Of a DNA stretch of 64,000 nucleotides, positions 23,664 through 63,285 are shown piece after piece. This DNA comes from Lytechinus pictus (lineage: Eukaryota): NCBI RefSeq assembly GCF_037042905.1, contig NC_087252.1, forward strand, positions 6,634,001 to 6,698,000, written 5' to 3'. Position 1 is the first letter of the stretch; each line of letters starts with the position of its first letter. The position numbers and the translations under genes were made by a program. The notes beneath the pieces are model-generated. The model was not told the origin of the DNA. It did no database searches and saw only the letters and a list, made by a program, of their open reading frames with translations.

Positions 23664-23817
23664 NNNNNNNNNNNNNNNNNNNNNNNNNNNNNNNNNNNNN
23701 NNNNNNNNNNNNNNNNNNNNNNNNNNNNNNNNNNNNNNNNNNNNNNNNNNNNNNNNNNNNNNNNNNNNNNNNNNNNNNNNNNNNNNNNNNNNNNNNNNNN
23801 NNNNNNNNNNNNNNNNN
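23664..23817. other. Assembly gap (154 N)
   Basis: Run of n. Confidence 1.
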
Positions 23818-30243: not shown

Positions 30244-30303
30244 TTACAAGTCCAGGGTAGACGCATACACCCGTTCATCCAGGTCATTAAGTGACAGGTA
30301 GCT
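30244..30303 (-). CDS. Gene 2 last exon (SYLSLNDLDERVYASTLDL*)
   Basis: ttcacag|AGC...TAA; conserved in the paralog at 60038..60097. Confidence 0.88.
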   Translation of the reverse strand, partial: SYLSLNDLDERVYASTLDL

Positions 30304-31403
30304 CTGTGAAAATGAAATGGTAAAGACAATGCGAACAACGTTATCAACAGCAATAATATCATATGATGTCAATGGTGAATCATAAATTGGTATCGTTCAT
30401 CAGCACCGGTGTGTTGGCTCAGTTGGTAGAGCGTGAGGTCGGGGGTTCAAACCCTGGCCGCGTCTGACCAAAAGACGTTAAAAGATGGGAGTTGCTGCTA
30501 CCCTGTTTGGCGTTCAACGATTAAAGGGATAGAGCCTATTTGATCTGGCGCTGCACAGCGGCTGCAGGGCCCACGATCAATTGGGCAAAGCAAATTTTCG
30601 GAGTATTTCATTTCATGTCTATTTCGAACAATAAAATATGGAGCCAAATTTATAGTACGATAGTCGTCGGAGTTGACTATGCTGTGATCTTGTCCTTGTC
30701 CAGAACGTATAGGTATCACAGGCCTAATTCAATCCTCATAGACTCGTGTGTTTAAGTGGCACCTAAAAAGAATTCATCAAAAATAAGGAGGAAATTCGAG
30801 GGTTGAATGTTTACAACCAGTGGATAGGATAAATGTCTGACATTCCATATCTGACTAGAAACGGGTACCTCAACCGGCTCATTTTAAAAATAAATCAGCA
30901 TTTATGAAGACTACACCTGACGGGCTCAAAAACATCACTTGAGAGAGTAAAATTACCCTAATTATTCTGCCAGTAAAAATTTAGTTCCATAGTGGTGATA
31001 TATCTTTCCAATTTGGAAAAAAGAAGTTCAGTAGGTACCCTCCCTAGAATCAGTGTTAGATTGTCAATCATATTCATTCTTTTTCGTCAATCAGCAAGAT
31101 CAAATTAAAAAATTGAGCAATGGGTTGGCTCGAATGAATATCTATGGCCTGCCACTTGTGATTAGGCCCGTGCAACCTCTAGTTCTTGGCCTTTGCCTTT
31201 TAATTTGCCTTCGAGGTCTGGGGTCCTTAGCCTCGGAACTTTGGCCGCAGACGTCTAGTCCTCGGCATTGTGATTGGCCTCTTTTTTTCAGCCTTGCTCA
31301 AAACATTAATAACATTAAAATAGAGTTGTGAGGAAGGGGTTTAGCATAATCGGTGATTGTGGATTTGCATAGTAGGATATAGAGTAGGATATATAGTAGA
31401 AGG

Positions 31404-31436
<33 letters not shown>

Positions 31437-34400
31437 ATATGTATATATGTATATATATATACATGTATATGTATATATATATATACAGTGCGTCCCACAA
31501 AAAACGAAACCGAGATTTATCGATAATTTATCATAACTTAATCACAAATACAATAGACAAATGACCTACCATTGTAAAGCTTAGAATCTCCTCTTTCATA
31601 AAAAATTACCTATATTATTTCTCATTCACGCATGAATGAGCAAAAACAATTGAAGAGGGGATACCAAAAAGTCATTTGGCGGGCTGTATCTGGGTTTCAA
31701 AAAGAAAACCACATTTAAAAAAAATTCAATATCTGCTCTTTAATTTGATACCTCAATTACAGAAAATGGTCAAGAAATAACAAAGTTCTGGTTATTTGAA
31801 ATAAGGCTTGAATTTCATAAAATTAAGAGGTTCTGCAGGCTAGCGTTCAAACTCACTTGACACTCCGTTTTGTTGACGATCGGCCAGGCATTAAGTCTTT
31901 TGTTAACCATTTGATTGCTTCTGTAGGAAACCGGTGAAAACACGTTTATTTAATGAAATAATGGAAATACAAGCTTTGTTTTGAGGGAACATAACATTTT
32001 TACTTCTTGACCATTTTTGGTGATTAAGGTATCAAATTAAAGAGCAGATATTGAACTTTTTAGGCATGTGATTTTCTTTGTGAAATTCAGATACCCCCCG
32101 CCAAATGAATTTTTGGTATCCTTTCTTCAAATTGTTTTTGCTCACTCATGCGTGAATGATGAATAATCTAAGTAATATCTGATGAAAGAAGAGATTCTAA
32201 GCTTTACATTGGTAGGTCATTTGTCTGTTTTATTTGTGATTAAGTTATGATAAATCGTCGCTTAATCTCGGTTTCGTTTTTTCTGGGACGCACTGTATAT
32301 ACATATATACTATGGTTTATACAAAGGAAATGCAAACAGTAACATGGGATCAAACTGTTGGAAGAATTAGAGTTAAATCTTACATGAGTCTTTTCTAGAA
32401 TCCTTTCCAAATCCTCCAGGATTCGGTCAAAGTTGGTCCTAGATGTAGGGTCCTTCTTCCAGCAAGTACTCATAATCGCATACCTGTGAAATTAAATAAT
32501 AATTGTTTATAATATACACACTGCAGTAACGTAGCTGCCCAGAGTGGACCACGACATAATTTAACTCTGGGATGAAAATCATGGTGTTATTAACACAAAT
32601 TTGGTTTTAATATAATACATTGGATCTGTTATTAAATTACCTAAGACCTTTGAATATTTCGGAAGACAGTTTTGTGTTGTTATTAACACAGTCGTTGTTA
32701 AATGAGAAGTTCACCCTGAAGAAAAGTTTGTTGTAAAAATAATAGAAAAAAAAATCGATCACAATTTTGATGAGGCTTTGACGGAAATCCATAAAAAATT
32801 AAAAAAAGTTATTAATATTTGATTTTGTTTTTGTATTTGTGACGTCATAACATACATGTAAAATTTATAAAAGTCATATTGGTTTAGGGTAACTATACTT
32901 TTTCTTTATTCTTTCAGGAGTGGAGATGAAGTAATTTGTCTGTTGATATTCTGGAGGTAAAATAAACATTTTCCAAAGAAATTGAGAAATTGAAATTTCA
33001 TTGATTATTTTACTACATGATAAAAGATGTTGGCATATTACGTCAAAAATAAAAACACGGAAATTATGACTTTTCCTAATCTTCGATGGATATTTCTCAA
33101 ACCTTCACCAATATTTTGTTTTATTATTTCCTCTGCTATTTTTACAATGAAAATTCTATCAAGGTGAACTTTAAACTGCAAGTTTACGTTAAATCGCGTC
33201 CAATACTAAAACTCATAATTTTACTTGAGTTTATGATAAAAATAAATAATGGAGTTATTACGGATTATTATGATTATCGTCATCAATGAAATTTTGTATT
33301 CTTTTCTAATAAGCTTTCCCTTTTGTTTACGAAAGGTTTTTGATGTTAATCATTTGAGGTTATTAATGTACTAATTATTGACGATCAGCTTGTGTATCTT
33401 TCTAGAAATTTCCTTCAAAACATTATTGGTCAAGGTTAACACAACTGAATAAAACAGAAATTACACTTCTTGCGCACAGTGACGAGGGCGTTGCATCTGG
33501 TAACCCTTGGCAACCTCCGTCTGGACAGTGGTAAAGGTCATTTTAGGGTATGGCCTTGCACCTACATTTATGAGAAAAAAAAGAATGATCATGATGATAT
33601 TCTGAAATATCTGAATATTGGATGACTCCAGGTTTGATGGTTTTGTTTAAAAGAGGTGCAAGTATTAGAGTTATATCAAAGTATAGAAATTCTTCCCACT
33701 CGCATACCCCCCTCCACCCCCTTCTCTCTGCCAAGAAGGAGCTCTTTCTCATCTCTCCCTAAGTTTCCAACGAGCAAATATCTTAACATCCGTGTATTTT
33801 TCACTTTAATAGCTACATCTTTAACAATCTTGAATCCCTACATCCCAAGGCGTGTCACCGTTAGAAAAAATTATGATTTCATCATTTATTTGTGTAAGTG
33901 TAAGTAGAAGCAAAAATCAGGGTATTTGTGTAAGTAGTCATGGTTGTCAAATCATTGTTGTTGCTTTCATTTAGCCTATCATCTTCATCATTTTGTAATT
34001 CTTTCAATTATAAATATAATATAGGATTTGTATAGCGCACGTATCCACATTGCTAGGTGCTCAAGGCGCTCCTATATTATCCCGGCTAAGCTTGTCTACC
34101 GATTCCGGTGCGCACAGCCTTTGAAGAATTACTTCCTGCCGACACCCATTTACCTCACCTGGGTTAAGTGCAGCACAGTGTGGGTGAATTTCTTGCTGAA
34201 GGAAAACACACAATTATATATAATCATAATCACTACCACCATCATCGTCATTAATATTTTCTGATATATATCGTAAAAAAAAAAAAACCCAGAAAATTTT
34301 ACAGAAGAAAAAACACCCCCAGATTTTACAGAAAGAAGTAACCATGGTAACCAAATCATTCTGTAAATTGTTAAAACAGGAAAGATTTTATACATTTTTT

Positions 34401-37400
34401 ATAGAATTTTACAGAACATGTCTGTTTTAAAAAGGGGGAAAACAGTTTATTACAATAAATTTGTAAGGTTACATACACCAAATATCTATTTTCTGTAATT
34501 TTACACAAATGCATGTAAGATTACACACTGCAGTAAGATTACAGGTGTTCTCGAGACTCTGCTTCAGGAATTCAGTTTTTTTTAAGTAGAAATTTTCTAA
34601 CAGTGTGGAAATTTAAGGTCAATAAAATAAATTTACACGCGTAGCTCCTGGAACCTCCTTCCTTACCCAGTGTCACTATTTCCCACAAGACAATACCAAA
34701 AGACCAGATGTCTCCTTCTTTAGTTTGGTCATTCGTTGCCATGATTTCTGGTGAACTCCATCTGGTTGGTTTCTAAGACGATGTAAATAAATGTGTTAAT
34801 AATTCAATCGATTAAGAATATCAATCTGCACCTTTCTTAAGTAGTCAAAATGTGTTTTACAATATTTCATCATAACTATTGTCTCGTGTTATTCAATCTT
34901 CATGTATTTCGTATTAGCTAACCAGGGGCCCGTATCATGAAGAGTTTCATAAAGAGTTATAACTGTTGTAACTCTTGGTAGTTGCCAATAATGGCAACTA
35001 CCATGGCAACATGGCTTAGCAGCCAATCAAAATCAAGAATACCGTGGTAGTTGCCATAATGGCAAAGTCACAACAGGTGTAACTCCTTGATCTATGTTAA
35101 ACAATAATGAATAATCATTAGGATTAACCCGTTACACTTACAGCTACGTCACCAAAGAGCGATGAAGAAAGTCCATATTCTGATATCTTGCATTGCTTTC
35201 TTTCTCCAAGCAACACGTTGTGAGCGCAGAGAGCTCCATGGATGATCTGAAAAAAAGAAAGACAACTTATACTATAAGGACATCAAGAGAATCGTCGTGT
35301 ATCTTGATCTTTGTTGAAACTAGATCAATTTGTTCCAAACGGAGGGGATGTAAACTATGCCTTATAATAAAATATGAATGTAAGTCCCTGACGAAAATTA
35401 AGTCATCGAGTATCTTTTAAAAAGTTCTAAAAGAACAAATAAATGAGGTTTCTGGTAAACAGTGCACGGGAGCACGCAGCGGATCAGCCGCTGCAATCGA
35501 CCTGCAACACGCGGAGATTATGCCTTCCGAAAATATTTGTTAAGATATCGTGGAACATTTTTATATTTTGCATTGGTATTTTGTGACAAGAATTTTCTTC
35601 GGGGACTTTCTGAACAACCATTTTGCCAATAAAGCTCAATCAAAAGATCTATTAAAGTGGTTGGTTAACATTGGTTTGACTTTAAAGAAATCTGAGCTAG
35701 AAGGTCACACTTATCACCTGTGTCTGTGATATGTTACAAAAATGAAGCCCAGAAAAAATTGCGTTCGAAAATAATTATTTAGTGCTTCAAAAATTGAAAT
35801 ATAAAGTGACCGGAAACACCATCTTAATTTTTTACAAAATCGGGGTTTGCCTTGTAGTTTTAGCTTTTCATTCTCAATAATGGTTGTTTTCAGGGTTTAT
35901 TAGTTCTAATACATGCACTTGTACGCATGTTTCATCTTGGTTTGAGAATTTTTTAAATCGGCTGCTTACAAAGTTACACAATACCTTTAACTAAAGGTTC
36001 CAAATTCTGATAACAACATAAGCATGAAAGTTAATTATTTTTGAAATCCCATTTAACTTCCTTTTGACGTCTGATTCCTCTTCATAAGGGATACCATTAA
36101 ACGATGTTACCTTCTTAGATGCAAGGAACTGCATCCCTTTAGCAACCTGCCAAGCCAAGTTAAGTAGGGTACCCTCATCTGTACGAACACCGTTTGGTTT
36201 GAGATTGCTGTACGTGGGTCGCGATTGCACCCCTGAAGTCTGTAGATGGGTAAGGAGTGTACCCCCTGATATGAACTCGTACAGAATACTGCCTAAATGA
36301 TAGATGATTTAAAGGAAAGGAAAGGTCAACTAGGTTACGTCATGCTTAATAAATCATCTTTAGTGCAATAAAGGATAACCAGGCTTGTGCCATCACATCA
36401 GGTTATCACGTCGGGTCGGAGAATGTAGCCGACAATTCGAGAAATTTGCTATAATTTCCTCAAAGCATCAGGGACATTGGACCCGATCTTTCGGGAATGT
36501 AAAGGACCTTTTTTTCGAATCGTTTGATTTCGTGATTGCCCAACCAAAAGCAATAACCCAATGTGATGACCCAAACCCGATAAATATCTCTTAATTATAA
36601 AATGGAATGAATTGTAATGTCTCCAGCTTGGTATAAGAGAATAATGGAAACAACGTGACGTGAGCATGGTGAGAGTCTGGGAAGCATGCTCTATTCTGCC
36701 TAGCGGTCCAGAACATGATAAAACAGACATACTGTCTTTACCAATGTCATTTAATTGAGTTCCAGATTGTTAAATGTTAAACTTTGACTACCCCTCTTTC
36801 TCTCTCCCCCAAAAAGGTGTATTTTCCCATCTGCCTTTAATGTCCTAACTCTCACGTTTGAGTGCCCCTGATACCAAGGATATTGGGAAAGGAGGCTAAC
36901 CAGCACCATACCGATTATTACAGATATTTTAAGAGTAACTAATACTTTATTTCAAAGATCATAATACTTTTAATGTCGATATTATCCAAGAGGTTTTACG
37001 TACCTTGCTCCTTACAATATCCGAGACATTTGACAATATTCGGTTGATCCGATAGCTGGTAAAGTATCTTGATTGTTTGAAGTACTTGTAATGATTTTAT
37101 CACGCGATCTATGATCATAAGAAAATATTAAATCGCATGACCTATCATTTTAATGTTTTCCAAAAAAAAAATGAATTAGGATTTACTAAAATAATGACAC
37201 GATTTAAAATAACAAGCAAGCGAGATGCTGTGATTTCTTATCGGGAGTTTTTACCCATTACCAATTTCTTGGCAAGCAAAAGACAAATATAACAATTATT
37301 TTCTATCAAAAAGTGGGACATGTGCTTCTTTTGCGAACCCCTGCCCCTCTTGCCATGTTAGCCTGGTTTATCAAGGGGAAGCCAGTGGGATGAACACTAT

Positions 37401-40400
37401 TGGTTTAGTTTTCATTATTCTTGTTCAGAATGACACCGAACAATGATATGCTAATTATAAAATTCAATTTTCATTGAAATGACAAACCAAGCATTACCTT
37501 AAGATTTATATCATTGTTAAAGGCCCATGCAGTCGCGTCGTTACGTGCAAGCCTTGCGGGTAACTAATTTTCCGACCTGCATATCGTCCACGGGTCGGCC
37601 GCATCGACAGTATCACGCACACAACTCGCAGAAGAATGTGTGCTCGCAGAAAAGTTTTAACATGCTCACAAACATTTTGCGGGTGAGTTTGCGGGCATTC
37701 ACGCGCAAGGCTTGCACGGAACGATGTAACAGGGCCTTTAATAAACATTATTGAATCAATGGGCTTATCACCTGGAATTTGCCTGATAGCAACGTCGATA
37801 TGGTTTTGGTTTGAGCGGAGGTCTCCCTTCCACACCTCGCCGAAGTCACCCCGTCCAATCGAGCCAAGTCTGGTGAAGAATGTCACGTTTTCACGAGCGA
37901 TGACGAAAGAGTGGGATGAATCGAGTTGTAATGTTGTGTACGCTAAAAAATTGTTTAAGAAACATAATTATTTTCGGTAAAATACAATTATTGTCATATT
38001 TAAAACGACAAATCCAAGCAATCCATATGAACTAAAAAGAAAGGGATAGTCTTTGATGATTATATATTGAACAATGATTATATTATCAGACTCAACGCAA
38101 AAAAGGATAAAAAAGTACGCCTTTGCCTATTAGAATATATATTTTGGCGTACACAATTCGAAATTATATGATATCTATCAGTTTATGCGATGATAATAGT
38201 TGTTATAGTGTGTTAAAATAATATACTTTAGTGTTTAGATGTAAATGTTTACGTGTTTTAAAAAATAGATGTATATAATATGATTTTACTTTAAGGTTGA
38301 ATGATGAATATATACAATAGTAACAATAAAAACACCATTGTTGAAAAGTTTTCACCTCTATCTCCACTTTGAATCATCTCATAAGCCACGTTGTCATTCA
38401 TCTCCTTTGGTGTATTTACTTCATCTCTGTTTAAAAAAAATGATTAGAGTTCATTATATCTCATAAGATATAAGTCATATTTTGTTTGTAGGCATTTAAT
38501 AGCACATTTATATTCCACAACAATCATGCAGGAAACAATTATTGTAATGACCAAACGATTATAGTAACCACGGGTGATTAACCATTATACATGTACGTAT
38601 ATAATATCGTGTATATGAAACTGAACGGGATTAGGAAAAAAACGGACTTAACCGTACACTGCTGGGTTAAAGTCGTCACACTTTTTATGAAACTAACGGA
38701 CAAAAATTGCAATAGAATAAAAACGTATCTTTCCCAGAAAATAATGGAACTGAATGATTATTCATTTGTATTGTAGTAACAAATAAAAAAAGGTTTCAAT
38801 AGCTGACAATCTGTCATACATCAAATATCAATAAATCATCCGATATTTGAACTGTTTTTAACGGTCGGGTAGTTCATTAAACAAATTCATAATAACTGAA
38901 GTGAAATCATCATTTCTTTCTCTCTCTGTTAATATACATATACCTTAGTAAAATTGGGACCTAAACGTTGCATTTTTATGCAGTTGCAAAAATACTGACC
39001 GGGTATTGAGACGAAGTGAGGGGTATATGGTGATTCCAAATATCATATCAATAATGTGTTAAAGCGGGTGTTCGGTATGCGTCTTGCCTGTTCATGAACA
39101 AGGGTTTTTGGTGAGGTTGTGTGCGTATGTGTGTGTGTGTGTGTGAGAGAGAGTTTTTGCAAGGTGATTCAGGAGGGTGTGTGCGTGTAGAGGATGTGAG
39201 GTCGTGTGTCATAGATTGTTCGAGTATGGTAGAGGTTTGGGTGTGTTTGTGTGTGTGTGTGTGTGTGTGAGAGAGAAAGATTAGTGGGTGAGATGATGTG
39301 CGAGTGTGGCAGACGTTTGGGTGTTTCTGTATTTGTGTGTGTGTGAGAGAGAGGGTGTACGAGCGTGGCAGAGGTTTGGTGTGTCTGTATGTGTGGGAGA
39401 AAGAGAGAGCGGTGCGTGGATTAGAGGGTCCGCGAGTGTGGCTGAGGTTTGGGTGAGTCTGTATGTGTGTGTCTGTATGTGGTGTGTGTGAGAGAGGGAG
39501 AGGGATGGGTGAGTGTGGCAAAGGTTAGGGTGTGTCTGCGTGTGTGTGTGTGAGAGAGAGAGAGAGGGATGGGTGGGTGAGAGGGTGTGCGAGTGTGTCA
39601 GAGGTTTTAGTGAGGGTGTATGTGTGAGAGATAGAGAGGGGTGGGTGAGAGGGTGTGCGAGTGTGTCAGAGGTGAGGGTGTGTCTGTATGTAGGTGTGAG
39701 AGAGGGGTGGGTTGGTGAGGTGTGCGAGTGTGGAAGAGGTTTGGGTGTGTCTGTGTATGTGTGTGTGTGTGTGTGTGAGGAATGGGTGGTTGAAAGGGTG
39801 TGCGAGTATTGCAGATGTTTGGGTGTGTTTGTATGTGTGTGTGTGTGAGGGATGGGTGGGTTTTAAATATGTACGAGTGTGGCAGGGGTTCGGATGTATC
39901 TGTATGTGTGTGTGTGTGTGTGTGTGAGAGAGGTGGATGGGTGGATGAAAGGTTGTGTGAGGTGTGCAAGTGTGGCAGAGGTTTGGGTGTGTCTGTATGT
40001 GTGTGAGAGAGGGTGCGCGAGTGTGTCAGAGGTTTGGGTGAGGTTGTATGTGTGCGAGATAGAGAGGGATTGGTTGGTGTGCGAGTGTGTCAGAGGTTTG
40101 GGTGTGTGTGTGAGAGAGAGAGCGGTGCATGGGTTAGAGGTTTAGTTGAACGGATATGTGTGAATGTGTGTGCATTTGAAAGGTACTAAGGTTGAGAGAG
40201 GGTGTAAGAGCGCTTGTGAGATTATTTTGTGTGTGAATGGGTAAGGAAGTGTGTATTTTGTATGTGCTGAAATTAGAGAATGTGCCTGTGCGAAAAGATG
40301 ATTTGGAGTTAACAAAGACTTGTGTGCAGTAATGAGTCATTGTAGGCCTGTAGAATGACAGAGTGGGTGTTTCCGTGGATGGGTGCGCCAGTGCGTGTGA

Positions 40401-43400
40401 TAAAAAAAAAATGTTTTTCCTTCCACTTACCCTTTTTCATTCATCTTTGACCCATCGAACTCTAGTGAATATGAATACAAAAAACACGTTGGGAATATAG
40501 TGATAAGAAAAGAATGATCCATGTGTAAAGTGAAATGGGAAACATATTGAGTTCACCCTAGAAAAAATACGTCTTGTTGAAATAAACATAACTTAATAGG
40601 TTACTTAGTGTCCATTTAACTTTCCTATGTAGTCAAGAAAAACAAGAGTGAAACAAGCACATTCTCTAGATTATTTTATCTTCTTTTTATTTTCATGTAA
40701 TAGCTATTTCAATAGAAATGATGACCAACAATCACCTGGTTTAGTCCTTCTCCTTAGGAGTACGAACTGTACAATGTTGATGATGATAGAAACTACTAGA
40801 AGGATTGCTAAGATAGCTATTCCAGCAGATGCTCCAGACCTCAAACCAGTCAGTGAACGTGGACATGGAGTGCATGTAGGCTCAGATGTGATGGATGTGG
40901 TCTCTGGTTGATAATCAATGTTTTAAAAACAAGAAACATACGTATTCGACATAGTGTATTACACGCCCGGGGGTGTTTCACAAAGATCTAAGTATGACTT
41001 AGAGTTACACTTAATTGCCGACGCGTTCATGTTTTGTGACGTGCAATCTTATTGATTACTAGGCAATAGAGCGCGACCTCTTAGCATGATCTGACCAACG
41101 CGGTCATGCCTTTATAACGCATGGAACTAGGCATTTAAGTGCGACTCTACATCATACTTACATCTTAGTGAAAGCCCCCCCGTTTTATTTGAACTTGTCT
41201 ATTTCAACTTTCGATCCACTATTTCAAAGTCCACCCTAGAAAATTGTTGATTTGGTTAAATAGAGAATAATCAAAGTAGCATAATGCTGACAATTTCATC
41301 AAAATCGGATGTAAAATGAGAAAGTTATGACATTTTAAAGTTTCTCTTATTTTTCACAAAACAGTGATTTGCACAATTCAGTGACATGCGAATGAGACAG
41401 TTGATGATGTCTTTCACTCACTATTTCTTTTGTTTTTATTGTTTGAATTATACATTATTTAATTATAGTATTAAACAATGATAATTCCACATGTTCAGGG
41501 AGGTATCATTCGTTGCTTCACTTGACAGTGAGGAGAAATTATAATATTTCGTAGTTCAGATAATAAAATACCAAAGAAATGGTGGATGATATCATCAGTC
41601 TCCTCATTTGCATATCAATTAAGCAAAACTTTAAAATGTCATAACTTTCTTATTTTACAACCGTTTTTTATGATATTTTCAGTGTTATTCTTGATGGATT
41701 CTTCTCTTTTTATTCAAATCAACTTTTTGTTGGGGTGGAACTTGTCCTTTAAGTTTGATTTTCACTCAAAAATTCATACAGCAACCACACCCCTTTTTTC
41801 TGGCACCGATTAGTAAGATCGCGTTATGCAATACAAAAATCATAGATAAGATAATGTTGCATCAGTGTCACTTAAAATTAGGAAATATCTCTCAAACGCG
41901 AACAAATACGATTTGACCATGTTGCTGCGTGCCAATCTTGTTCGGACATATCCTTTATTAAAAAGGCAACTTCAAGGCTTTTAGAAACCAATCAGTCCCA
42001 ATTCCCTTCCCTTGTGATAAAAACATGTTACCAAAACTTGCTTTCTGTAGTATATCTTCAATGCAACTCAACCGTGAACTGCATAGTTGGATCTTGGTGC
42101 ATAAAAACCAAGCTACAAATCAAGAAAGTGTACTTGATCTCCTCCCCTGTCACAATTCTGAGCCAAATTCCAACCATTCTACAACTAATATAACTTAATA
42201 AAGTGTAGCGCCCAGTTTCTCCATATGCCATGGCATCTGGAGTAAACTTAGTTACCCGTAAAATTGTTCTCAAAAACCTTCTGTGGAAAATTTCGATTTG
42301 AGCAATATCTTCATAGTCACATACTTACCCATTCCCATCCCCATACACACCCATATGTCAGTATTGGTAAAATTATCTGAATAAATTATTCACACTGTGT
42401 ATCAATTGACAGTTGTAAATCTTTTTGTTTTTGCTAATAACATGAATAAAGTGTACAAAGCTTTCCTTGCCGTTGATTTATACTTATATTATGCTATTCT
42501 TTACTTTGACCCAAGTCAAAACAGGTATCAGGGAGTAATTGAGTAGAATTTATAAAAATGTCCTTTTTCATCAGAATACACGGTACGCCGTGATAACCAC
42601 CATATTTTCCTGTTTGCTGATATTGAGAATTTTGCTGATATTGTGTAAAATATGACATTTTCGGTAAAATGTTATGTAAAATATGATTTCTTATTTCCCT
42701 TTTCCCACGTTCTTACGAATATGCTTTAAACATGATAAAGGTATTCAATTATTTTAATTAAACGAAGAAGTTTGAGCGCTAATAGCTTTCGGGCCTAGTT
42801 AACTTGTACCAGGGAGTTGGGAGTACTCTAATCCCATCTCCCTGCTTGTTTTACCCTAAGAAAAATGCAATTGAAATACGTTTAGGGAAGCCCAGATTAA
42901 ATTCAGCACCATCAGAACGAGGAAATTCATACGCGGTTAACTGTCGTTCACACACAAGTACATAATATAAAACGGAGCTTGAATTTTACATCGGTAGATG
43001 TGTTGTTCGTTAACATATTTGCCGATTAAAGTAGCAAGGATAGCCTGGCTCAATGCACATCTTTTGAAATTGATCAAGCTACAACATTTCATCACTTATC
43101 AGCATATGCTTCTGTACATTTGAAAATCTATTGAAATTCTTTAAAATGGACTAGCGTTCCTGTCTCGTCTTAAGCATTTAAACACGTTTGAGTACAAAGT
43201 CTAAGACCTGTTACTGCCATTTTGTTTCAAAATCATCCAAGTAGATACTAATAATGACAATAATAATAACATGCAACATGTGCAGATACGTACTATGGTA
43301 GCTCTAAAAAAGCGGTGCATTTTATTATCCAAATTTGCACGTGAAAATAACCCATGCTCAGAAGATACAATAGTCTTGTGGCAAGCATCTAGAGTGTATA

Positions 43401-46400
43401 AAATTGATATCCTTGTGTAAGTATTTGGAACAAAAAGTCTTGCCTATTTTCTGATAAACTTTGTATATAACCTCACGCTCCATTCCTATATATTGTTTGA
43501 TCTGGATATTACATTGCGATTTAATCATTCGTCACAATTTATGTATATATATGATAACCATTTCTGATTATTATTAGGGGAAAGAAAAATGACTTTGTAT
43601 TTTCTGAAAGTATGACAGCCTTAGATGTAATAAATTACACCAAGATAGAAATTTCAAAATATACTCTTACCTCCTTCATAATCTGTCTTTGCATGGCTAG
43701 TTGTCAATTTTCCTGCGATTGCGGAAAATCATATGTATATAATTGCAATGTAAATAAGGGACAAAAATAATCTTTTTTTAGGAAAGATAATTGAGAAAGT
43801 ACTCTGATAATTGTTTCATTATGTCTCATTCTATCCGATTTTGTAATGATCACCTCTCCCGTCTCTATGATGTTGTTAACCAATTGCCATGATCGTAATT
43901 GTATAGACACGAGCTAAAAAAGAAGAAAAAACGTCTTTCTAAACACGAACAAAGATATTATTTACATGTGCCACCCTTGTACATAAACACGTAATAAGTC
44001 ACGCAAATATAATTGAAAAGTTTCATATGATATTCTTACCTTCTTCATATTCTGTCGTTGGATGGCTCGTCATCAATTTTTCTGTAGTTTCTGAAAATCA
44101 TACATCATCAACAATAATATCGTTGTGTCATTTTATGGAATAAGCATTATTTCCTATTTCTGTATCAACGATGAATATAACGTCATTATCCGTTCCTAAC
44201 ACAATACAATGTTGTAATGATGTTGCAATGTTGTAATGGTCATCTATTTTCACATTTTAATTATCGCCTCTGTCATGTATTTAATGTTATTTGCAGATTG
44301 CCATGATTGAATTTAAAGACGACAGAAACAAAAAAAAGAACATTCTTTCGAAACACATATATATCAAGTCCCCCTTTTTAATACACCCGCTCAAAGACTT
44401 TCTTGTCTGATGGAACAATTTACAAATCTTTTAAAATTGTGAATGAGCCTTTTCATACCTCACAGGCAGAGCTAGCAAATATAATATAGAAAAGCAGTCA
44501 TCACATTGCTCAGTTCACTGGTAACTATATAAATTTATAAACCTTGGTCATCATAAAAAAATGTATAAAAAATGGTTGAGAAGTTTTTTAAGCCAACTAT
44601 TCTTTAATGAGCTTACTTTGGGGGCCATACGTTTTTTTGCCACTTGCTGTATTTCCAAGATAATTCCCTGCAACACATTCAAACTCTGTTGACAGGTCAT
44701 ATTCTGATTCTGTTAAAGCCACAAAATTGATTCCCGTTGAAGATTCATGCTTCAGGATATCATTGGCGTATATGAAGTAATGTCTTATCGCTGGAAAAGG
44801 TTGGTTGGCAGCATCAATGGCGCATGTAACCCTCAAGTTAGGATCAAGTGACTCAAACGTCACAGTCACAATATCATTACAAGGTCGATCTGAATGATAA
44901 TGAAGGAAAAGAATGTATAGATAAACAGTTATCGGAATAACCCTGGGAATTCCATTTCCATTTAAATAATAATATTTGAAGATTTTAGCCTCGGAATAGT
45001 TTACTAGATAGATGGCGCATAATTAATGTTGTGTTTATTATTATCATTATTATCTGTTGGTGCGTTAGTCTTTTGGTCCGTTAGTCTGTTAGTCTGTTCA
45101 GGAATGTTAAGGTTTTTGTTCAACTTGCTCCCATTTCCTTTCTTCTGCATAAATTATGCTTATACTTCACCTTGGATAATACTACACTTGGTACAAATTA
45201 TCGTTTGGTATACCACATGTGTGTTCATAAGGAAGATGGGGTCAGAGGTCATCTAGGGGTCAAAAGATCATTGCATATTTTATTTATTGCAATATCAGGC
45301 GAGACTCATGGTTTGTGAGCCATCTTGTTTATTTATGTAGTAATTATCCAGCTTTTTATTTTTCATTTCTTTCTTTCTGGGGCTTAGTATGCTATTCCAC
45401 AGTCAACTATCAGAGTAAATCTGAAGACAAGAGTTTCTATCCATTCATTTCAAGATTATTTTCCAAACAATAGTGAGTATACATGTAGAGTAGCAACTGA
45501 TCAAAATGTGGGCAAGAACAAGCGTTTCAAGCCAAACTCGTGCGGAGTAAATTCTCACGGTACACTATAAAAATATTAAGTGCTAATTTAGCACTTACAG
45601 TGCTTGTATAGTGACTGAACTACGAGTGCTGATTTTCATGTTCAAATTTAAACTAGAAAATCAGCACTCAATATACAACAACTGTAAGTACTAAATTAGC
45701 ATTTCATTTTTTACAGCGTATAACTATGATTGAAAAGTGTTAGGAATGCAAGATATCCATTATAATGAAATTTACTGATATCAGCATTTGATGGCATAAA
45801 CAGTCTGCCATTGCAAGGTGCTTACTTCTGACGGTCTCCTGTAAACTATACTCTCTACCATCACTACAAAAGTTCATGGTTTTGTGTAAGGACGGAAGAT
45901 GGTTTTAGGGACTGGTTTAAGGTACATAAGGAAGTGTTACAAGGCCGCAAATTTTCTCCTATTCGTTTCATCATAATAGTCTGGATGATCGGTGCAAAAA
46001 ATAGCAAGAATTGTTCAGATTATGGTACAAGCATGAAATTTGGCTGACAGGTAGAGTAAACAGTGCTGAACATTTTTAGCTGGGGGTGCCAACCTGATCT
46101 CTCTTCGTATAGCAACAGTTGCTAGGTAACATATTCACCTTAGCAACCACCATTTTGTGGTGTTATCTTCATTTTAAAAACTATATTTTTACTTCTAAGC
46201 ACCAAATTTACAATCACATATCAAGCAACGTTCCAACCATGTACAGCAACAGTTGCTAAGCAACACATTTTCCATAGCAACTACAAATAATATTCCTGAA
46301 TACCACATCTGGTCATAATATCTGAATGAAAATTGTTAGAAAATTGGTCAAAGTATAAAACCTGGGAGTAAAAACTAATCATAATAAAAAAATTATAAAA

Positions 46401-49400: not shown

Positions 49401-52400
49401 CATGACTTGTATACATGGTATAATTGTTCTTGGGTTGTTGTGATTAATGTATTAATGCGCTAATAAAAAAGATGAGATTCATATAAATTTTAATCATAAA
49501 AAAGATACCCTATAATAATTTGTTACCGTGGAAAATGTTACTTAGCAACGGTTGCTATGGTGCTCATTTTGTCTACCTATGGAAACATTCATTACATGAG
49601 GAATCTATGGGCCAGATTTAATTTATGAGCTATTCTGATTAAATTATAATGATCTAAACTAATATAAAGAATTTGTTGCTAGGGAAGAGGGTCACTTAGC
49701 GACCGTTGTTATGAATAAATGGATCAAAACTATTGTGATACAAAGGAACATACTTTAGATTAAAATTTGTATGACATATCGCCTGTGAAAATGTAACTCA
49801 AGCCCAATTAAGCTCAGTTACTAAGGTAAATAGATTACCTAGCAATCGTTGCTATGTTTAGTGAACTCACGCTGGCACCCCCTGCTAAAAATGTTTAGAA
49901 TAACTTACTCTACCTTTTGTGCCAATTTGCATGCTTGTACCATTTTCTGAACATTTTTTTCACCAATCACCTAGACTATAAGCAATGGATTTGGTTAGGA
50001 ACAGGTTATATTGCGGTCGCATGCAGCCCATCACAGCTAAGAAAGATATTGGATGCAAATGGGGATAATGGCGGAAAAAAAAAACTTGTTCAGGAACTCA
50101 TCCTCCTCCGAAATAAACTCTTTATTGGCTAATAGTAAAATTGCTTTCATTTGAAGATGTTAGCTATTTGTATCTCGTTAAATGACCAAGGGGTTACGTA
50201 CGAAACTCACTGCAGTATTGGAAGACTGCACTACGGGCATTTTAACATCTACGCAAAATCTCGCCAAGCAGCAATATTTCCCTTAAGTCTGGTTTTCTTT
50301 ACGGATCTGTGACATGAGGATTGAACATGTCTAAAGAACACAAATTTGATGACATAGATACGAACCGCTTCCACAGAATACTTTGACGTATTAAACTGAA
50401 TGCTTATAAGAAGGAGGACATCTTCTTGCCCTGCAAATTATTTGCCCTGGCAAATTTTCATTCGGCAAGACTCCGGAGGCTACCAATGTGGATTGTTACG
50501 CCACTGCATGTAACTTGTAGTACAATGTATCTTCTCACATTTTCCAAAAGGTTTTATCAAAATAAAAGTTTCTCTCACCAGAAACGTTTTTTTCTCCTGT
50601 ATTCACATTTAAATCAGGTACATTTCTATTGCCTCGCTGAATACATTCATTCCGATGTGTTTTTACACCAACGAGCGATGTGAGATACCGATCAAAGCTA
50701 TTATCTTGAATTACATACCATCGATCACTTTACAATCGGTTTCATCGTTGTGACTTTTGTGGTCCCATTTTAGCGCAATATCGAATAATAACATTATGGC
50801 ACCTTGCCCACTATCCAAACCAAAACTTCTGTCATTAAGCCTTTTAATATTCTCGTTGATATAAGATATTTCATTTCGAATGCTGACATTGTGGATTGAT
50901 CGCTGCTACTCATAATAAAGCAGTTAGAAAACATTGCAGTGCATTTGCATTTTTTAAACCCCAAACTTGCCCATTTTTGCCACAAATCATGTTTTCTAAA
51001 GTATCACCCTGACTCTCAAGAAAAAAATATTGCAAGTTTCTATGATCAAAATCATGGGTAAATTAGTATTCATTTTTTATGCTTGTGCATAAAAATGAAA
51101 GTATATATTAGTCTATACGAAAATTCATGTACACATCCAAGCGAAATTTCTGAAATTTGACTTTTAAAATTTGAGACAATACAAGTTCTTTTTGTAAAAA
51201 ATGATACGCAGATTGAAATTTGTCAAGATGATAATTATATATCAGTAAAATTTTCCGGAAAGTTTCAAGGCAACTGCTTCATATTTTCTTTAATTTATGT
51301 AAAATCATGTATTTCACAAATTCAAATTTTGGGCAAACAAATGTAAAAATAATACAATTTTCTATTCAAAATTTCAGGCAAATGACGTTTCTAGCTCTCA
51401 TAAATAGTATTAAATTGTAGGAAATGTATTTATCTTTCGTATGAAACAAGTTTTATAGCAATCGAAAGTTTATGTCAAAATCAATTTAAAAAAGTAGAAT
51501 TTTCTGAAAATTTGTCGGGTTAGGTTCAGGAAACAGACTGTTCTTCTCATATACATGTATTGTTAATTCTGGCAGCGTCAAAATTTGGCCCAGAAGCCCC
51601 ACATGAAAATGTATCCTTCTTGGAGTGGCACCTCGTTCAATTATAATCCTGAATAGCACATGCTGATGTATTGTCCGAATATGACAAAAATTAAGTTTTT
51701 ACATGTACATAATGTCAAAGGGAAGATTATCCTACATGTATAGGATGTACATTAAGTATTATGATTGCATTTTTGTCGCTATTATAAACCAATGAACCTT
51801 CTTCACATTTTCTTGCCTTTGTAACGAGATTTCTAGTACAATAATTGGTAAAATTGTGAAAGTTAGTGTCATTAGAAGGATTGTTATTAGTTGAGCTAGA
51901 AAGATATCAGCTCCGTGATAACTCCACATACGTGCTGTGTAAAAAATATTTTATGTTACATGTATTTAAAACAAAACTTTTTAAGATTCAAAACTTGAAT
52001 GTCATAGAGCAAAGAGTCTATTAAGTACAATATAAACTGCATCTCAAGTGAGTAGTGCATAGATGTTCGAATTTGATGAAACATAATTAATACCAGGAAT
52101 AAATATGTTTTTTATGAATATCTTTTTTCAAAATCAACAGTGAAATCTTAAGTACTCTGCTTTGGTATGTTTTATTAATGTGTAAATGTTTTAATACCGA
52201 TTTTTTTTAATTATTAAACAACATAAACATATAATTTGCTTACTGTGCATCTCAAGATTTTCTGTTATTTCTCCATTGAGAGCAGATACGTCATGACCAC
52301 TGATGACGCATTTCAGTGTTTCGCCATAGTTCTCTCTAGTAGCTGGAAATGTACAGACAATCTCTTTACTGGAGAACCCTGCATCAGCTGGAAGAGTATA

Positions 52401-55400
52401 TTCTAGAAAACCATCACACGGGGCAGGATCATCACCTAGCATCAATGTAAGTGTTTCTTGTGGTCTACCTCCTGTAGCTCTGCACGTTGCTATGTATACA
52501 TCAGCATCATCTGCAATAGCACTTCCAATCGTCAATGATGATGTTGATTGGACTGAAAATACAATGTGATTTTTTTTATCTTTACATGGTATGTCTACTG
52601 ACATTAATCTATTTTCAATGATACTACAAATTATTTTAATACCACTATTTTCCGAAACATGAACATTTAGATTATCTTTTAGCATTCATATGGTGTGTTC
52701 GTTCTCCACCAAAAAAAAATAAAAAATAAATAAATAAATAAAACGTAGAACACCTCTTGCATTTAAAAGTTTTTGCAAGAAACATATTTGTGTCAGTGTC
52801 AGTTAAAGATAAGGTGTTGATGAATATAACTTGAATTTATCATCTTTATTTAACCTACCTTCTACTTTAAGTTCCTTGACATCAGTCTCCAATGGCCCTG
52901 AGAAGCATTTATACCGTCCTTCATCGTCTATCTGTGAATTAGTGATTGTCATAGTGGATTGGGGATAAGCAACACCCGTCTGTGATACATCAAAATTGTC
53001 ATATTTTGTAGCTTCTGTTGGGTGGGTTCTGAGTATACCTCTGAAAATATCAACATTTGGAACAACTGAGACATCTGTCCATTTAAATACGCCTCCTATG
53101 CCTATAGAATCAGGGGTCTGTCCGCATTTGTAAACTGCATCATGTCCTTGCTCTACCGCGGAAGGTCCGTTGAAAGCCAAAAGTGACTGGCTGTTCGCAA
53201 GTTCTATGAACTTCAAAAAATCAATAAACAAGAATATAAACAAGATGTTATGTAAATGAGAAACAATGAGAAATACCTTTGGTCCTATGTATCGGAGGGA
53301 GGGGGTAAAGTTTGCTATACCCCTCTCGCAAACACGTGTCAAAACCACCACAACGCGTTTAATTGATTGCCAATTTATAAACTATTTACATGATTTGATA
53401 ATTCCCACGCGTTTTATTCTCCATTCTTACTTCTTTTGTGAATCAAAACCCCGTAAAGCATATAAAAAAATGCCCTTTAGCGATAAATAAAAAATCGATT
53501 GAATTATAATTGAAATGTGAAAAAAAGCGAATGATAAAGACGAAAACATATGGGCCTAAGCTCTATCTTTATTCGATTTCTTTAAAGACAAAGACCGGAT
53601 AAAAAAAATTGAAACTGAAAATGTGAAATCCTATAAACTAGTAACATGACAGAGCACATCAATGTATGTTTCATGGATGTCAATGGCTTGGCAGCTGAGC
53701 ATTTTGTCTAAGAAAAAAGAACAAATCAGGATCGAAAATTACATAAAATCATAATCATACTCATAAGCCAGGAGGGTTGTGATTAGATATATTTGTATGT
53801 ACATGCAAATAAGATCATTATTTTCTTGGTTTCCAGATTTTGAATTTTTTTTTTTACAATCCACAGAGGAAAGTATTGACTAGATTTTTTGTTTTTTCTC
53901 TGATTGGCCCTTATTTGGCATAAATTGTTATGTCAGAAACTGTTCAACAATTGATTCGGCTGACAAATTCAAAACAGCCCTTAAAATATGTAAAACCTTT
54001 AATATTCAAATTGTACCTCAGCTCTATTAAGTGAATTCACAACTGTTCTTTTTCTTTTCTTTATTTTCGTAAGGGCTTGTAGATATATTTATTATGTGTT
54101 ATGCAATAGGCCCTATATAAATAATGACTATTACTATTCTATCATCATTATCATTATCTACTTCAAGAGAAAACGGAATATTGAACATGGCAAAAACTAA
54201 TCCACAGCTGTAGATTTCCTTATGTTAGGTCTTCAAAAGAAAATCTATTTGTGATACCGATTGGTATGGAAGTAAAAAAATTCAGGTTACAGTTCGTTTT
54301 TCCAAAGGTTCGTACCTCCGAAACCCGTAAATTGCTAGATATCTTGATTTCGTAACAAAAATGAAAATGGGTTCATTCATCCGAAACTTTGTGGCGTTAT
54401 TCCGAAGGTTTGTTAGTCAAAAAACGAAAAAAGATTCGTTAGTCCAAACACGAAATAAAATTCGTTAGTCCGAAAATAAAATATAGTTCGTTAGTCTGAA
54501 ACTGAAATAGTCTATGTCGAAGCCGGGAAAATGGAAGGGCAGGCTTGAAGGGGGAGGGGGGGGGGGGGGGAGAATCACAGTTGCTATTAATTTGTTATGA
54601 GTATGGAAAGAGCTACTCTATCGTTACCGGGGCGATTTATACGTACGAAGGATTTTCTCGAAGCGGGTGATCATAGACTTATGGTGCTTGTTAATTTTCA
54701 TGCAGGAATCGATATCATGTTTGTGTCTGATTGGGGCCTGGATCCTGTCCACGGAGGATTATTTTATTGTTACTGGGGGAGCTGAGCATTGTCACAGTGG
54801 CCAGGTCCATGATGGGGGCGTGGGAAAACAGCAATCTGCAGCCATCGTAGCCAGCTTTATGGAAGGGGGGGGGGGACAGTTATTTCGCATTATTTCATTT
54901 TCGGAATAATGAACCTTCGGAATAATAAACCTCGTTTCGTTTCCGGACTTATTTACCTTCGGAAAAACGAACCTTTGAAATAATGAGCCCTTGTAGTAGT
55001 CGAATCTTTGGAATAACCGACCTTCTGAAAAACGAATGTATCCCCGAAAATGTTTTCGAGGCTGAAAGTGATATGAACAGATAAAGTATTCGCAGACTCA
55101 CAAACAGTGATAAACATGCATGAAAATATTTTGAATAAGAACAAAGGAAAGTGGGGACATGACATCATCAAAGTCCAATAACTGAATTATTTTTTTATCC
55201 TATTTTCACTTTCTGAAAGTGGTTTTTATTCTTTATCTTTTTATTTACATCGGTAGTCTGAAGTACCCCCTTTAAAATATAATCTCATTTAGTGTCGCGT
55301 ACAATAAGATTATATTAAAAAAGCTCTTGCCATTGTGTTATTGGTTTCATAATGTACGTCCCATGCTGAGATTAAGTAAATGCGTTCTCTCGGTATATTT

Positions 55401-63079: not shown

Positions 63080-63285
63080 CTCAATAAAAATAAAGGAAAA
63101 TCAGCTAATGTAACTTAATCTATGAAATCATTAGGGCATTTGTTGTGTATGTGGATCTTTGTTGCAAATAGAAAAATCTATATTCTTTCCTCTCCATTGG
63201 TTGATAGAAAAGAACGGTAAACCGCTCCTATGCTAATTGTATGATTAATAATTCGTTTTAAAGGTAATTTAAATGTATGTATTAA

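Follow-up and report, generated by a model that had tools for sequence, protein, structure and literature searches.

The window analysed here is a 64,000-nucleotide stretch of Lytechinus pictus DNA (NCBI RefSeq assembly GCF_037042905.1, contig NC_087252.1, positions 6,634,001 to 6,698,000 of the forward strand). On its minus strand lies a gene whose predicted product is a single-pass Ig-domain receptor with an RTK-derived pseudokinase. The product carries a two-tyrosine motif, located in its juxtamembrane segment and not in an immunoreceptor tail. The features below were placed using the genomic sequence, Logan contigs of sequencing run X1, RefSeq and paralogs.

52242-52508 (approximate bounds), minus strand: C2-set Ig-like ectodomain exon, from tblastn with the L. 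variegatus paralog P0021.
44642-44884 (approximate bounds), minus strand: Ig-like ectodomain exon, from tblastn with P0021, residues 230-308.
40736-40916, minus strand: stalk and transmembrane (TM) exon (AGIAILAILLVVSIIINIVQFVLL, then RRRTKP); 3' end confirmed at 40736, 5' end approximate.
40431-40461, minus strand: 31-nt micro-exon encoding (E)FDGSKMNEK(G), from consensus splice sites, its letters in an X1 loose end, and paralogs.
38356-38426, minus strand: 71-nt exon with the first tyrosine module, encoding DEVNTPKEMNDNVAYEMIQSGDR, from AG/GT sites, an X1 contig junction and an upstream loose end.
37929-38383, minus strand: the YEMI-x6-YTTL motif (YEMI 38383-38372; spacer QSGDR 38371-38357; split Ala codon 38356 and 37942-37941; YTTL 37940-37929).
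38355-37943, minus strand: intron of 413 nt within the motif span, from genomic sequence and an RNA contig.
37772-37942, minus strand: 171-nt exon encoding AYTTL, the kinase fold start FVIARENVTFF, an intact Gly-loop GRGDFGEV and VAIR for VAIK, from sequence, the X1 joint 37772/37108 and RefSeq.
30244-37108, minus strand: remainder of the pseudokinase, plus the tail, on 7 exons (37108-37004, 36292-36111, 35246-35142, 34772-34667, 33561-33465, 32483-32384 and 30303-30244), from a splice-aware model that equals RefSeq P0084 and from PF07714 matches.

The borders of the 71-nt exon read ttaaacag/AGATGAAG...GGAGATAGAG/gtgaaaac on the minus strand (38426-38356), and the acceptor of the next exon reads ttttttag/CGTACACAACATTA, with the exon starting at 37942. 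The first base of the 71-nt exon is a third codon position, the exon ends in phase 1, and its splice sites are the same in 5 paralogs. Two candidates had AG/31 nt/GT together with the reading frame, and only 40461-40431 is well formed with consensus splice sites; this micro-exon is 28 nt long in three paralogs. The spliced model is identical to RefSeq XP_063959132.1 (P0084, L. pictus) at 323/323 residues. The RefSeq start codon is the ATG at 38401-38399, where the transcript allele in run X1 has GTG. At the other end, exon 30303-30244 encodes SYLSLNDLDERVYASTLDL, followed by the stop. The ectodomain is nectin/CD80-like Ig; Pfam gave a weak PF08205 match to exon 52242-52508 (E 0.0018, under the curated cut-off) and no match to exon 44642-44884.

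A search of sequencing runs found no run recorded as RNA that holds the stretch. X1 is classed as RNA by a guess, but the run behaves as spliced RNA, with introns lacking depth except for a short match at 37699-37738. This match is very deep, and an Rfam search of the intron around it (37109-37771) returned nothing credible. In one X1 contig, 38356 is spliced directly to 37942 across a 413-nt gap with GT..AG ends on the minus strand (CT..AC on the plus strand); its flanks measure 85 nt and 38 nt, with a single mismatch. A second joins 37772 to 37108. A third leaves the 71-nt exon in a loose end whose reverse complement, ACCAG/AGTTCGATGGGCCAAAGATGAATGA, matches the 3' end of the TM exon (40736) together with the 31-nt exon. 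Read mapping was restricted to 36900-38600 to avoid a long degenerate tandem repeat (39235-40122), so junctions farther upstream are known only from this loose end.

A preliminary description of this DNA had proposed that the splicing of two exons creates a YxxI-x6-YxxL motif that is preceded by acidic residues and situated about 30 residues beyond the TM segment. The genomic sequence, the spliced contig with its 38356/37942 junction and the RefSeq protein all agree with this. The motif is encoded across the splice as NDNVAYEMIQSGDR/AYTTL (exon 38426-38356 to exon 37942-37772), neither the RNA joint nor the RefSeq model has a further exon between 38356 and 37942 that would change the spacing, and acidic and amide residues precede the motif. 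On the minus strand the codons are AAT GAC AAC GTG GCT, then TAT (38383-38381) for the first tyrosine (Tyr-1), GAG ATG ATT, CAA AGT GGA GAT AGA and the split G/CG, and TAC (37940-37938) for the second (Tyr-2), ACA ACA and TTA (37931-37929), so the interval originally proposed encloses the motif exactly. Tyr-1 is the 32nd residue past the TM segment and Tyr-2 lies 42 residues from the membrane.

It had also been pointed out that the motif requires both the 31-nt exon and the 71-nt exon, which are in frame only as a pair (102 nt), and that skipping both would delete the first tyrosine in frame. The dependence holds. By contrast, a search of four runs with tiny coverage (one contig in X1, 2-3 raw reads in X2) gave no 40736/37942 joint and no loose end at 37942 that would indicate such a skip. 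Likewise, no annotated L. pictus or L. variegatus isoform loses a micro-exon; all keep both. Skipping of the two exons thus has no support in these data.

Tyr-2 precedes the start of the kinase fold (FVIARENV) by 13 residues. Both tyrosines come after the TM segment and ahead of the N-lobe in a receptor with an RTK fold, as in receptors of the Eph and Kit/PDGFR type. The fold belongs to PF07714, and the solved kinases closest to it are Tie2, Ret, FGFR and Kit. In this copy the beta3 Lys, HRD Asp and DFG Asp that mark an active receptor tyrosine kinase are all lost, with VAIR for VAIK, HGALCAHN for HRDLAARN and EYG for DFG (the last two in exon 35246-35142). The beta3 Lys and HRD Asp are also lost in the family members that we inspected, including those of Diadema. 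Loss of these three residues would make autophosphorylation impossible, and the receptor chain is predicted to have no kinase activity of its own. The C-tail tyrosines YLSL...YAS are conserved. The aligned counterpart of this tail in Tie2 is TYVNTTLYEKFTYA; against full-length FGFR1 the alignment stops at residue 769, just beyond the PLCgamma site Y766 (PMC9093983). In an AlphaFold2 model, residues 1-53, which include both tyrosines, have pLDDT of 25-28 and no contacts, compared with 80-95 in the kinase core. The juxtamembrane segment is therefore predicted to be disordered, although low pLDDT is weak evidence of disorder when the alignment holds just 27 sequences.

The broad ITAM consensus Yxx[LI]-x6-8-Yxx[LI] is matched once in the cytoplasmic part, by YEMI-QSGDRA-YTTL. 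When the 52-residue juxtamembrane segment was shuffled, such a match arose in 0.03% of the permutations; for the whole cytoplasmic part the figure was 2.6%. The motif is low in information (about 6e-5 per residue) and would be unremarkable alone in a genome-wide scan. What makes it more than chance is its conservation. Paralogs and other urchins keep both tyrosines; a lack of such conservation would, according to the preliminary description, have refuted the motif. Twenty-seven distinct juxtamembrane sequences share an identical YEMI, with YEMV in one paralog and YETI in the chromosome-17 clade, and the second YxxL occurs in 51/54 sequences from 5 urchin species. The splice boundary GDR/A-YTTL is at the same position in all paralogs.

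The copies in the L. pictus cluster are only about 10% diverged in DNA, and a functionless pattern might be retained simply because the paralogs are young. However, among these tandem paralogs pN/pS was 0.14 in the 19-codon core of the motif and 0.15 in the N-lobe, but 1.22 in the 9 codons upstream in the same exon. The core is thus under purifying selection, and YEMI and YxxL are also kept in Strongylocentrotus and Diadema. Conservation of a nucleic-acid element such as a splicing enhancer does not fit either, because pS in the core (0.25) equals that elsewhere and synonymous sites are not extra-conserved. We consider a chance pattern very improbable.

The family is specific to sea urchins and tandemly amplified, and it has Ig ectodomains. 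The first module is missing from many annotated models, and the L. variegatus paralog P0034 has Phe at Tyr-2. For the paralogs at C8:6913575 and C8:6820764, blastn and tblastn found no TM, 31-nt or 71-nt exon within 7.6 kb upstream; these copies may be truncated or may have longer introns.

Conservation extends to the flanks, namely N-D/E-N before Tyr-1, E-M at +1/+2, A before Tyr-2 and the hydrophobic residue at +3. This bears on whether YEMI and YTTL are YxxPhi sorting signals that would be read unphosphorylated by AP-2 mu2 and control endocytosis of the receptor. Both tetrapeptides match YxxPhi and keep the +3 hydrophobic residue, and they lie 32 and 42 residues from the membrane in a segment predicted to be disordered. 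However, the other conserved flanks are at positions that AP-2 does not read, which suggests a more specific reader. Sorting is thus an improbable main function. It would be compatible with a docking role, and the same tyrosines are used for both in other receptors.

The residue at -2 of Tyr-1 is V, T, P, M, S or N among family members and E in the L. variegatus ortholog P0027 (NDNEAYEMI). In the preliminary description VAYEMI was noted to fit the ITIM consensus, leaving the sign of signalling ambiguous. In this copy V-x-Y-x-x-I does fit [S/I/V/L]xYxx[I/V/L], and in several S. purpuratus and Diadema members the -2 residue is T or S, compatible with an ITSM or ITIM. Recruitment of a phosphatase of the SHP2/Corkscrew type to Tyr-1 would make this a receptor that dampens signalling. 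By contrast, a conserved [S/I/V/L/T] at -2 is not found across the family, and Tyr-2 carries R, K or A at that position. Because the -2 residue is so variable, we regard an inhibitory motif as quite improbable. A look for an SHP2-type gene was uninformative: three further tandem-SH2 loci (C14, C2, C5) had neither a phosphatase nor a kinase signature in the 30 kb downstream.

The claim of canonical ITAM spacing held only in part. The spacer is x6 in Lytechinus and Strongylocentrotus, but Diadema has x9 and the chromosome-17 paralog x5. Inside clades the spacing is fixed (x6 in 19/19 distinct camarodont sequences, x9 in 7/7 from Diadema) in spite of indels directly upstream, a hint that the spacing itself is constrained, as two-site reading would predict. 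Between Diadema and the camarodonts Tyr-2 is offset by 3 residues, yet in both YEMI is 22 residues from the kinase, a better fit to a linear motif than to a structural contact. In sea-star relatives with an active-type kinase (HRDLAARN, DFG), AVYESI and EVYSNVGP align at the same place with a spacer of about x15, and the C-tail motif is shared. The sea-star YESI...YSNV is probably homologous to the urchin pair, although the alignment behind this homology is short and Cys replaces Tyr-1 in several sea-star paralogs.

In the classical ITAM, D/E/NxxYxxL/I-(x)7-YxxL/I, an exon boundary splits the first tyrosine module (PMC4536121). The urchin motif has six residues in place of seven. It too is spread over two exons, but these meet one codon ahead of the second tyrosine. 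From these sequence comparisons, the urchin pair appears not to be inherited from a classical ITAM module, and its spacing appears not to be a family-wide constraint.

A working analogue of the ITAM could still have arisen by convergence with vertebrate immunoreceptors and with Draper-Shark. Once Src-family kinases had phosphorylated Tyr-1 and Tyr-2, YEMI-x6-YTxL would be bound by a Syk/ZAP-70 protein through its tandem SH2 domains, giving an activating Ig receptor. Tandem SH2 proteins are known to read Tyr-Tyr distances that include the 9-13 residues found here. Several further observations fit this. The motif falls within the x6-8 consensus with N at -3 of Tyr-1, as in D/E/NxxY (PMC4536121), its host chain has no catalytic residues, its spacing is invariant per clade and the tandem cluster of Ig receptors looks like an immune-type family. 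Recruitment of Syk is possible because the L. pictus genome encodes a Syk/ZAP-70-type gene at about 2.012-2.047 Mb on C11, with SH2 matches (C11:2046497-2046730 and 2041225-2041371) followed about 25-35 kb downstream on the same strand by an active kinase (DFGMSKAL...YY) whose exons best match ZAP-70 and SYK. In addition, SFK-ITAM-Syk signalling is known in an invertebrate receptor, Draper (PMC4503800). Against this analogue are the spacers that differ among clades (5, 6, 9 and about 15 in sea-star relatives), the x7 spacing and other exon split of the classical motif (PMC4536121), the Phe at Tyr-2 in P0034 and the absence of the first module from many annotated models. We therefore consider it possible but unlikely.

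The interpretation that we favour, with moderate confidence, is that the tyrosine pair forms phosphotyrosine docking sites for SH2 proteins on a receptor pseudokinase, within a juxtamembrane segment predicted to be disordered, and is not a classical ITAM. The receptor would descend from a receptor tyrosine kinase of the Tie2/Ret/FGFR type that lost catalysis. Clustering driven by ligand would recruit an active tyrosine kinase, most likely of the Src family, with an active RTK partner as an alternative. A Src-family kinase is suggested because YEMI resembles the optimum for the Src SH2 domain, pYEEI. The recruited kinase would phosphorylate Tyr-1 (YEMI), Tyr-2 (YTxL) and the C-tail YLSL...YAS in trans, and SH2 proteins would dock on these sites, as proposed for JX1 and JX2 of EphB6. 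In Lytechinus and Strongylocentrotus the sites are 10 residues apart (the ITAM-like x6) and could therefore also be co-read by a tandem-SH2 protein. These partners are inferred from motif resemblance. Transcripts for Src-family kinase, PLCgamma and Syk are present in echinoderm eggs (PMC11593052).

The two origins may also be combined. A dead-kinase Ig family derived from an ordinary RTK could have had its docking tyrosines drawn together (from about x15 through x9 to x6) into a true ITAM read by Syk. This seems rather unlikely to us. If true, SFK-ITAM-Syk immunoreceptor signalling would have arisen independently and step by step in a deuterostome without adaptive immunity, and variants without the first module would be decoys or inhibitors.

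Sea urchins have very large repertoires of innate receptors and, to our knowledge, almost nothing is known about signalling by their non-TLR surface receptors. Our literature search, for which many subscription papers were outside reach, found no description of an ITAM in an RTK-type pseudokinase or of this family. Its receptors have Ig ectodomains and a dead kinase, together with a conserved pair of juxtamembrane tyrosines and, in the tail, a site resembling those of Tie2 and FGFR. The question at stake is whether ITAM-type signalling arose by convergence in urchins, and the spacer series x15, x9, x6 and x5 in echinoderms is a natural experiment on the evolution of tandem-SH2 ligands. The case also cautions that a match to ITAM spacing is insufficient on its own to call an ITAM.

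With the classical ITAMs of CD3, CD79, FcR-gamma and DAP12, the urchin motif shares the arrangement N-x-x-Y-x-x-I...Y-x-x-L, a cytoplasmic location in a chain without catalytic activity, encoding by two exons and a Syk-family kinase in the genome. It differs in that it adjoins a kinase fold and is not on a short free tail, in its clade-variable spacing and in a TM segment without an acidic residue for pairing with a partner chain. EphB6 and EphA10 likewise have two conserved tyrosines, JX1 and JX2, just before a dead RTK kinase fold. Eph juxtamembrane tyrosines lie 6 residues apart in YxxP contexts, so motif and spacing differ from those of the urchin, whose kinase is Tie2/Ret/FGFR-like and not Eph. 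The Eph segment packs on the kinase, whereas the urchin segment is predicted to be disordered (AlphaFold2, 27-sequence alignment). For EphB6 and EphA10, trans-phosphorylation of the JX tyrosines and SH2 docking have been proposed (PMC8347583).

The Draper-I/Src42A/Shark system of Drosophila resembles the urchin case as an invertebrate receptor with its own cytoplasmic ITAM-like pair, read by a Syk homologue. Draper differs in having EGF repeats and no kinase fold, and its ITAM spacer is longer than the urchin x6. In Draper-II, alternative splicing swaps the ITAM for an ITIM (PMC4503800). This parallels the splicing idea of the preliminary description, but no splice variant was seen for the urchin gene at very low depth. 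Tie2, FGFR and Ret have the closest kinase domains, and the urchin C-tail YLSL...VYA aligns with the Tie2 tail and the FGFR1 Y766 region. The active-type sea-star relatives carry similar juxtamembrane and tail tyrosines. By contrast with these kinases, the urchin receptor has lost the catalytic residues, so its sites would not be autophosphorylated, and its ectodomain is nectin/CD80-like Ig.

The candidate motif is encoded across a splice junction on the minus strand, and its two tyrosines lie in two exons:

38426-38356, minus strand: 71-nt exon, preceded by ...aacag and followed by gtgaaa
From 37942, minus strand: exon with the second tyrosine (Tyr-2), preceded by ...ttttag

Read across both exons, the spliced sequence gives NDNVAYEMIQSGDR, an alanine from a split codon (G/CG) and YTTL, that is YxxI-x6-YxxL. 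The bounds proposed in the preliminary description, 37929-38384, bracket the encoded motif exactly, and the motif is indeed hidden without splicing, its halves falling in different frames and in different stretches of the stop-free-stretch map. We aligned four sequencing runs to window positions 36900-38600. In X1, a sequencing run available as Logan contigs that behaves as spliced RNA, one contig bears out the suggested junction by joining 38356 to 37942; the 413 nt that it skips have GT..AG ends on the gene strand, and its arms measure 85 and 38 nt, with one mismatch. The 37772/37108 junction is present in another X1 contig. A third exits the 71-nt exon upstream, and the reverse complement of its loose letters reads ACCAG followed by AGTTCGATGGGCCAAAGATGAATGA; these are the final five bases of the TM exon (end 40736) and then a 31-nt micro-exon at 40461-40431. 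This micro-exon is one of just two in-frame candidates of the form AG/31 nt/GT and the sole one whose splice sites fit the consensus. In the two raw-read RNA runs, only 2-3 reads fell on the N-lobe exon. Intron depth in X1 was nil except for a short match at 37699-37738, in intron 37109-37771. About 35 nt there were very deeply covered in all four runs, by short contigs and raw RNA reads (word depth up to about 16,000), and both flanks of these reads are unrelated to the window; Rfam gave no credible match for this intron. The stretch is probably a piece that it shares with a repeat or with some abundant RNA. Between the micro-exon and the 71-nt exon, the 2-kb intron contains a degenerate TG/GA-rich tandem array (39235-40122; periods about 51-157, long-period arrays with 78-85% matches). 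GC skew is very strong over 38001-40000 (+0.50), and 154 N occur in a row at 23664-23817 (gap or masked).

A splice-aware model of the cytoplasmic part has 11 exons, from 40916 to a stop codon ending at 30244, and is identical over 323 residues to RefSeq XP_063959132.1 of L. pictus ("tyrosine-protein kinase receptor Tie-1-like"). That entry starts at an ATG at 38399-38401 inside the 71-nt exon, which yields a 323-residue cytosolic protein and leaves out the TM and ectodomain exons; the X1 transcript contig runs on upstream into the micro-exon and the TM exon. The contig has GTG (Val) at the annotated start codon and a Ser-to-Pro change in the micro-exon, both in the variable part, and no difference in the motif core. 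The TM segment and Ig-like exons lie 5' of the motif, and the exons 3' of it encode a PF07714 kinase fold with an intact Gly-loop, in which VAIK is replaced by VAIR, HRDLAARN by HGALCAHN and DFG by EYG. Full-length paralogs carry V/I-set and C2-set Ig domains followed by the TM, the juxtamembrane segment and the pseudokinase, and among solved kinases Tie2, Ret, FGFR and Kit come nearest. Among relatives, the same dead catalytic loop was found in sea urchins alone (L. variegatus, Strongylocentrotus purpuratus, Diadema antillarum and D. setosum), the next-best matches being active RTKs of sea star and acorn worm at 33-37% identity.

On contig C8 of the L. pictus genome there are eight copies in tandem (6.67-7.03 Mb), and C17 carries one diverged copy. 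The neighbouring paralog, with its 3' half at window 60571-63100, has an in-frame TAG in the TM exon (C8:6713878-6713880) where others have CAG (Gln), and its juxtamembrane and kinase exons 3' of the stop appear intact; possible explanations are a pseudogene, an error in the assembly or use of this copy from an internal start. The paralog at C8:6820939 has TG, not AG, as the acceptor before the N-lobe exon, and neither for it nor for the paralog at C8:6913575 was a TM exon or micro-exon found within 7.6 kb upstream.

As for conservation, five more L. pictus paralogs have retained the 71-nt exon together with its splice sites, as well as a micro-exon of 31 or 28 nt. Their core reads NDNVAYEM[IV]QSG[DN]RAYT[TA]L, and the membrane-proximal part is freely variable. 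Nei-Gojobori counts among these paralogs gave a pN/pS of 0.14 for the 19-codon core, 0.15 for the N-lobe and 1.22 for the nine codons that immediately precede the core within its exon, with pS alike in all three. Among 54 distinct juxtamembrane sequences from five species, YEMI is identical wherever the gene model holds the first module, except for YETI in the C17 clade and YEMV in one paralog; the module is missing from many models, mostly because the model start is the Met inside YEMI. The second YxxL is present in 51/54. One L. variegatus paralog departs from the pattern by having Phe at Tyr-2, and in S. purpuratus a Sushi-domain member has the second module only. By these evolutionary criteria the motif is functional. 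When the L. variegatus ortholog was modeled with AlphaFold2 on a 27-sequence family alignment, the kinase core was confident and the first 53 residues, with both tyrosines, had a pLDDT of 25-28. A strongly constrained block in a linker that is predicted to be disordered and otherwise evolves freely has the signature of a short linear motif.

Two further proposals concerned inhibition and splicing. Reading VAYEMI as an ITIM needs V at -2 and is unlikely: the direct L. variegatus ortholog has E at this position, and other members have P, M, N, S or T. As proposed, loss of both micro-exons would preserve the frame (102 nt here and 99 nt in three paralogs), but neither the 2-3 raw reads and the X1 contigs nor the annotated isoforms of L. 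pictus and L. variegatus show such a skip. Because some Diadema models run from the TM segment directly to the second module, variants without the first tyrosine may exist as genes or isoforms.

The ITAM-like spacing described as canonical holds only within one clade of the family. All 19 camarodont (Lytechinus and Strongylocentrotus) sequences have a spacer of 6; it is 9 in all seven from Diadema, and 5 in the C17 paralog (68-nt exon, same boundary) and its L. variegatus counterpart. In an ungapped comparison YEMI lies 22 residues from the kinase fold in both Diadema and camarodonts, and Diadema Tyr-2 comes three residues later; what is kept is the presence of a YxxL, not its position. In two active sea-star relatives the sequence AVYESI...(15)...EVYSNVGP aligns with this segment, so the tyrosine pair is probably older than the loss of catalysis. 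The last exon (30244-30303, minus strand) encodes a second tyrosine pair, SYLSLNDLDERVYASTLDL, or YxxL-x7-YAST. This C-terminal pair, YLSL-x7-Y[AE]S[TV], keeps its spacing in the active sea-star relatives as well as in those urchin family members that were inspected; its second half is YESV in Diadema.

The main rival is that the motif is a true Syk-binding ITAM analogue. L. pictus has a Syk/ZAP-70-type gene (C11:2012000-2047000, minus strand) with SH2 matches at C11:2046497-2046730 and 2041225-2041371; downstream of these is an active kinase (HRDLAARN, DFGMSKAL...YY), and the best matches of its exons are ZAP-70 and SYK. Transcripts of Src-family kinases, PLCgamma and Syk have been reported in echinoderm eggs (PMC11593052), and in flies SFK-ITAM-Syk signalling proceeds via the receptor's own tail, where a splice variant carries an ITIM in place of the ITAM (PMC4503800). 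That the spacer is strictly constant within each clade even speaks for some form of two-site reading. However, the spacer is 6, 9 or 5 depending on clade, against seven residues in classical ITAMs, and the urchin exon boundary falls one codon before the second tyrosine, whereas the classical boundary splits the first tyrosine module (PMC4536121); we consider a Syk-binding role unlikely. Together, the spacing variation, the sea-star relatives, the exon boundary and the C-terminal pair point, with modest confidence, to a pair of RTK-derived SH2 docking sites on a pseudokinase scaffold as the most likely nature of the motif.

Docking sites of this kind have counterparts in known receptors. HMMER aligns the urchin C-terminal pair with the Tie2 tail TYVNTTLYEKFTYA, which holds the C-tail docking tyrosines. 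With full-length FGFR1 the alignment extends to residue 769 and so stops shortly after the PLCgamma site Y766 (PMC9093983), with the residue-by-residue pairing at Y766 not displayed. Because the urchin receptor would be unable to phosphorylate itself, any phosphorylation must come in trans, a route that has also been proposed for EphB6, another pseudokinase, at its juxtamembrane tyrosines (PMC8347583).
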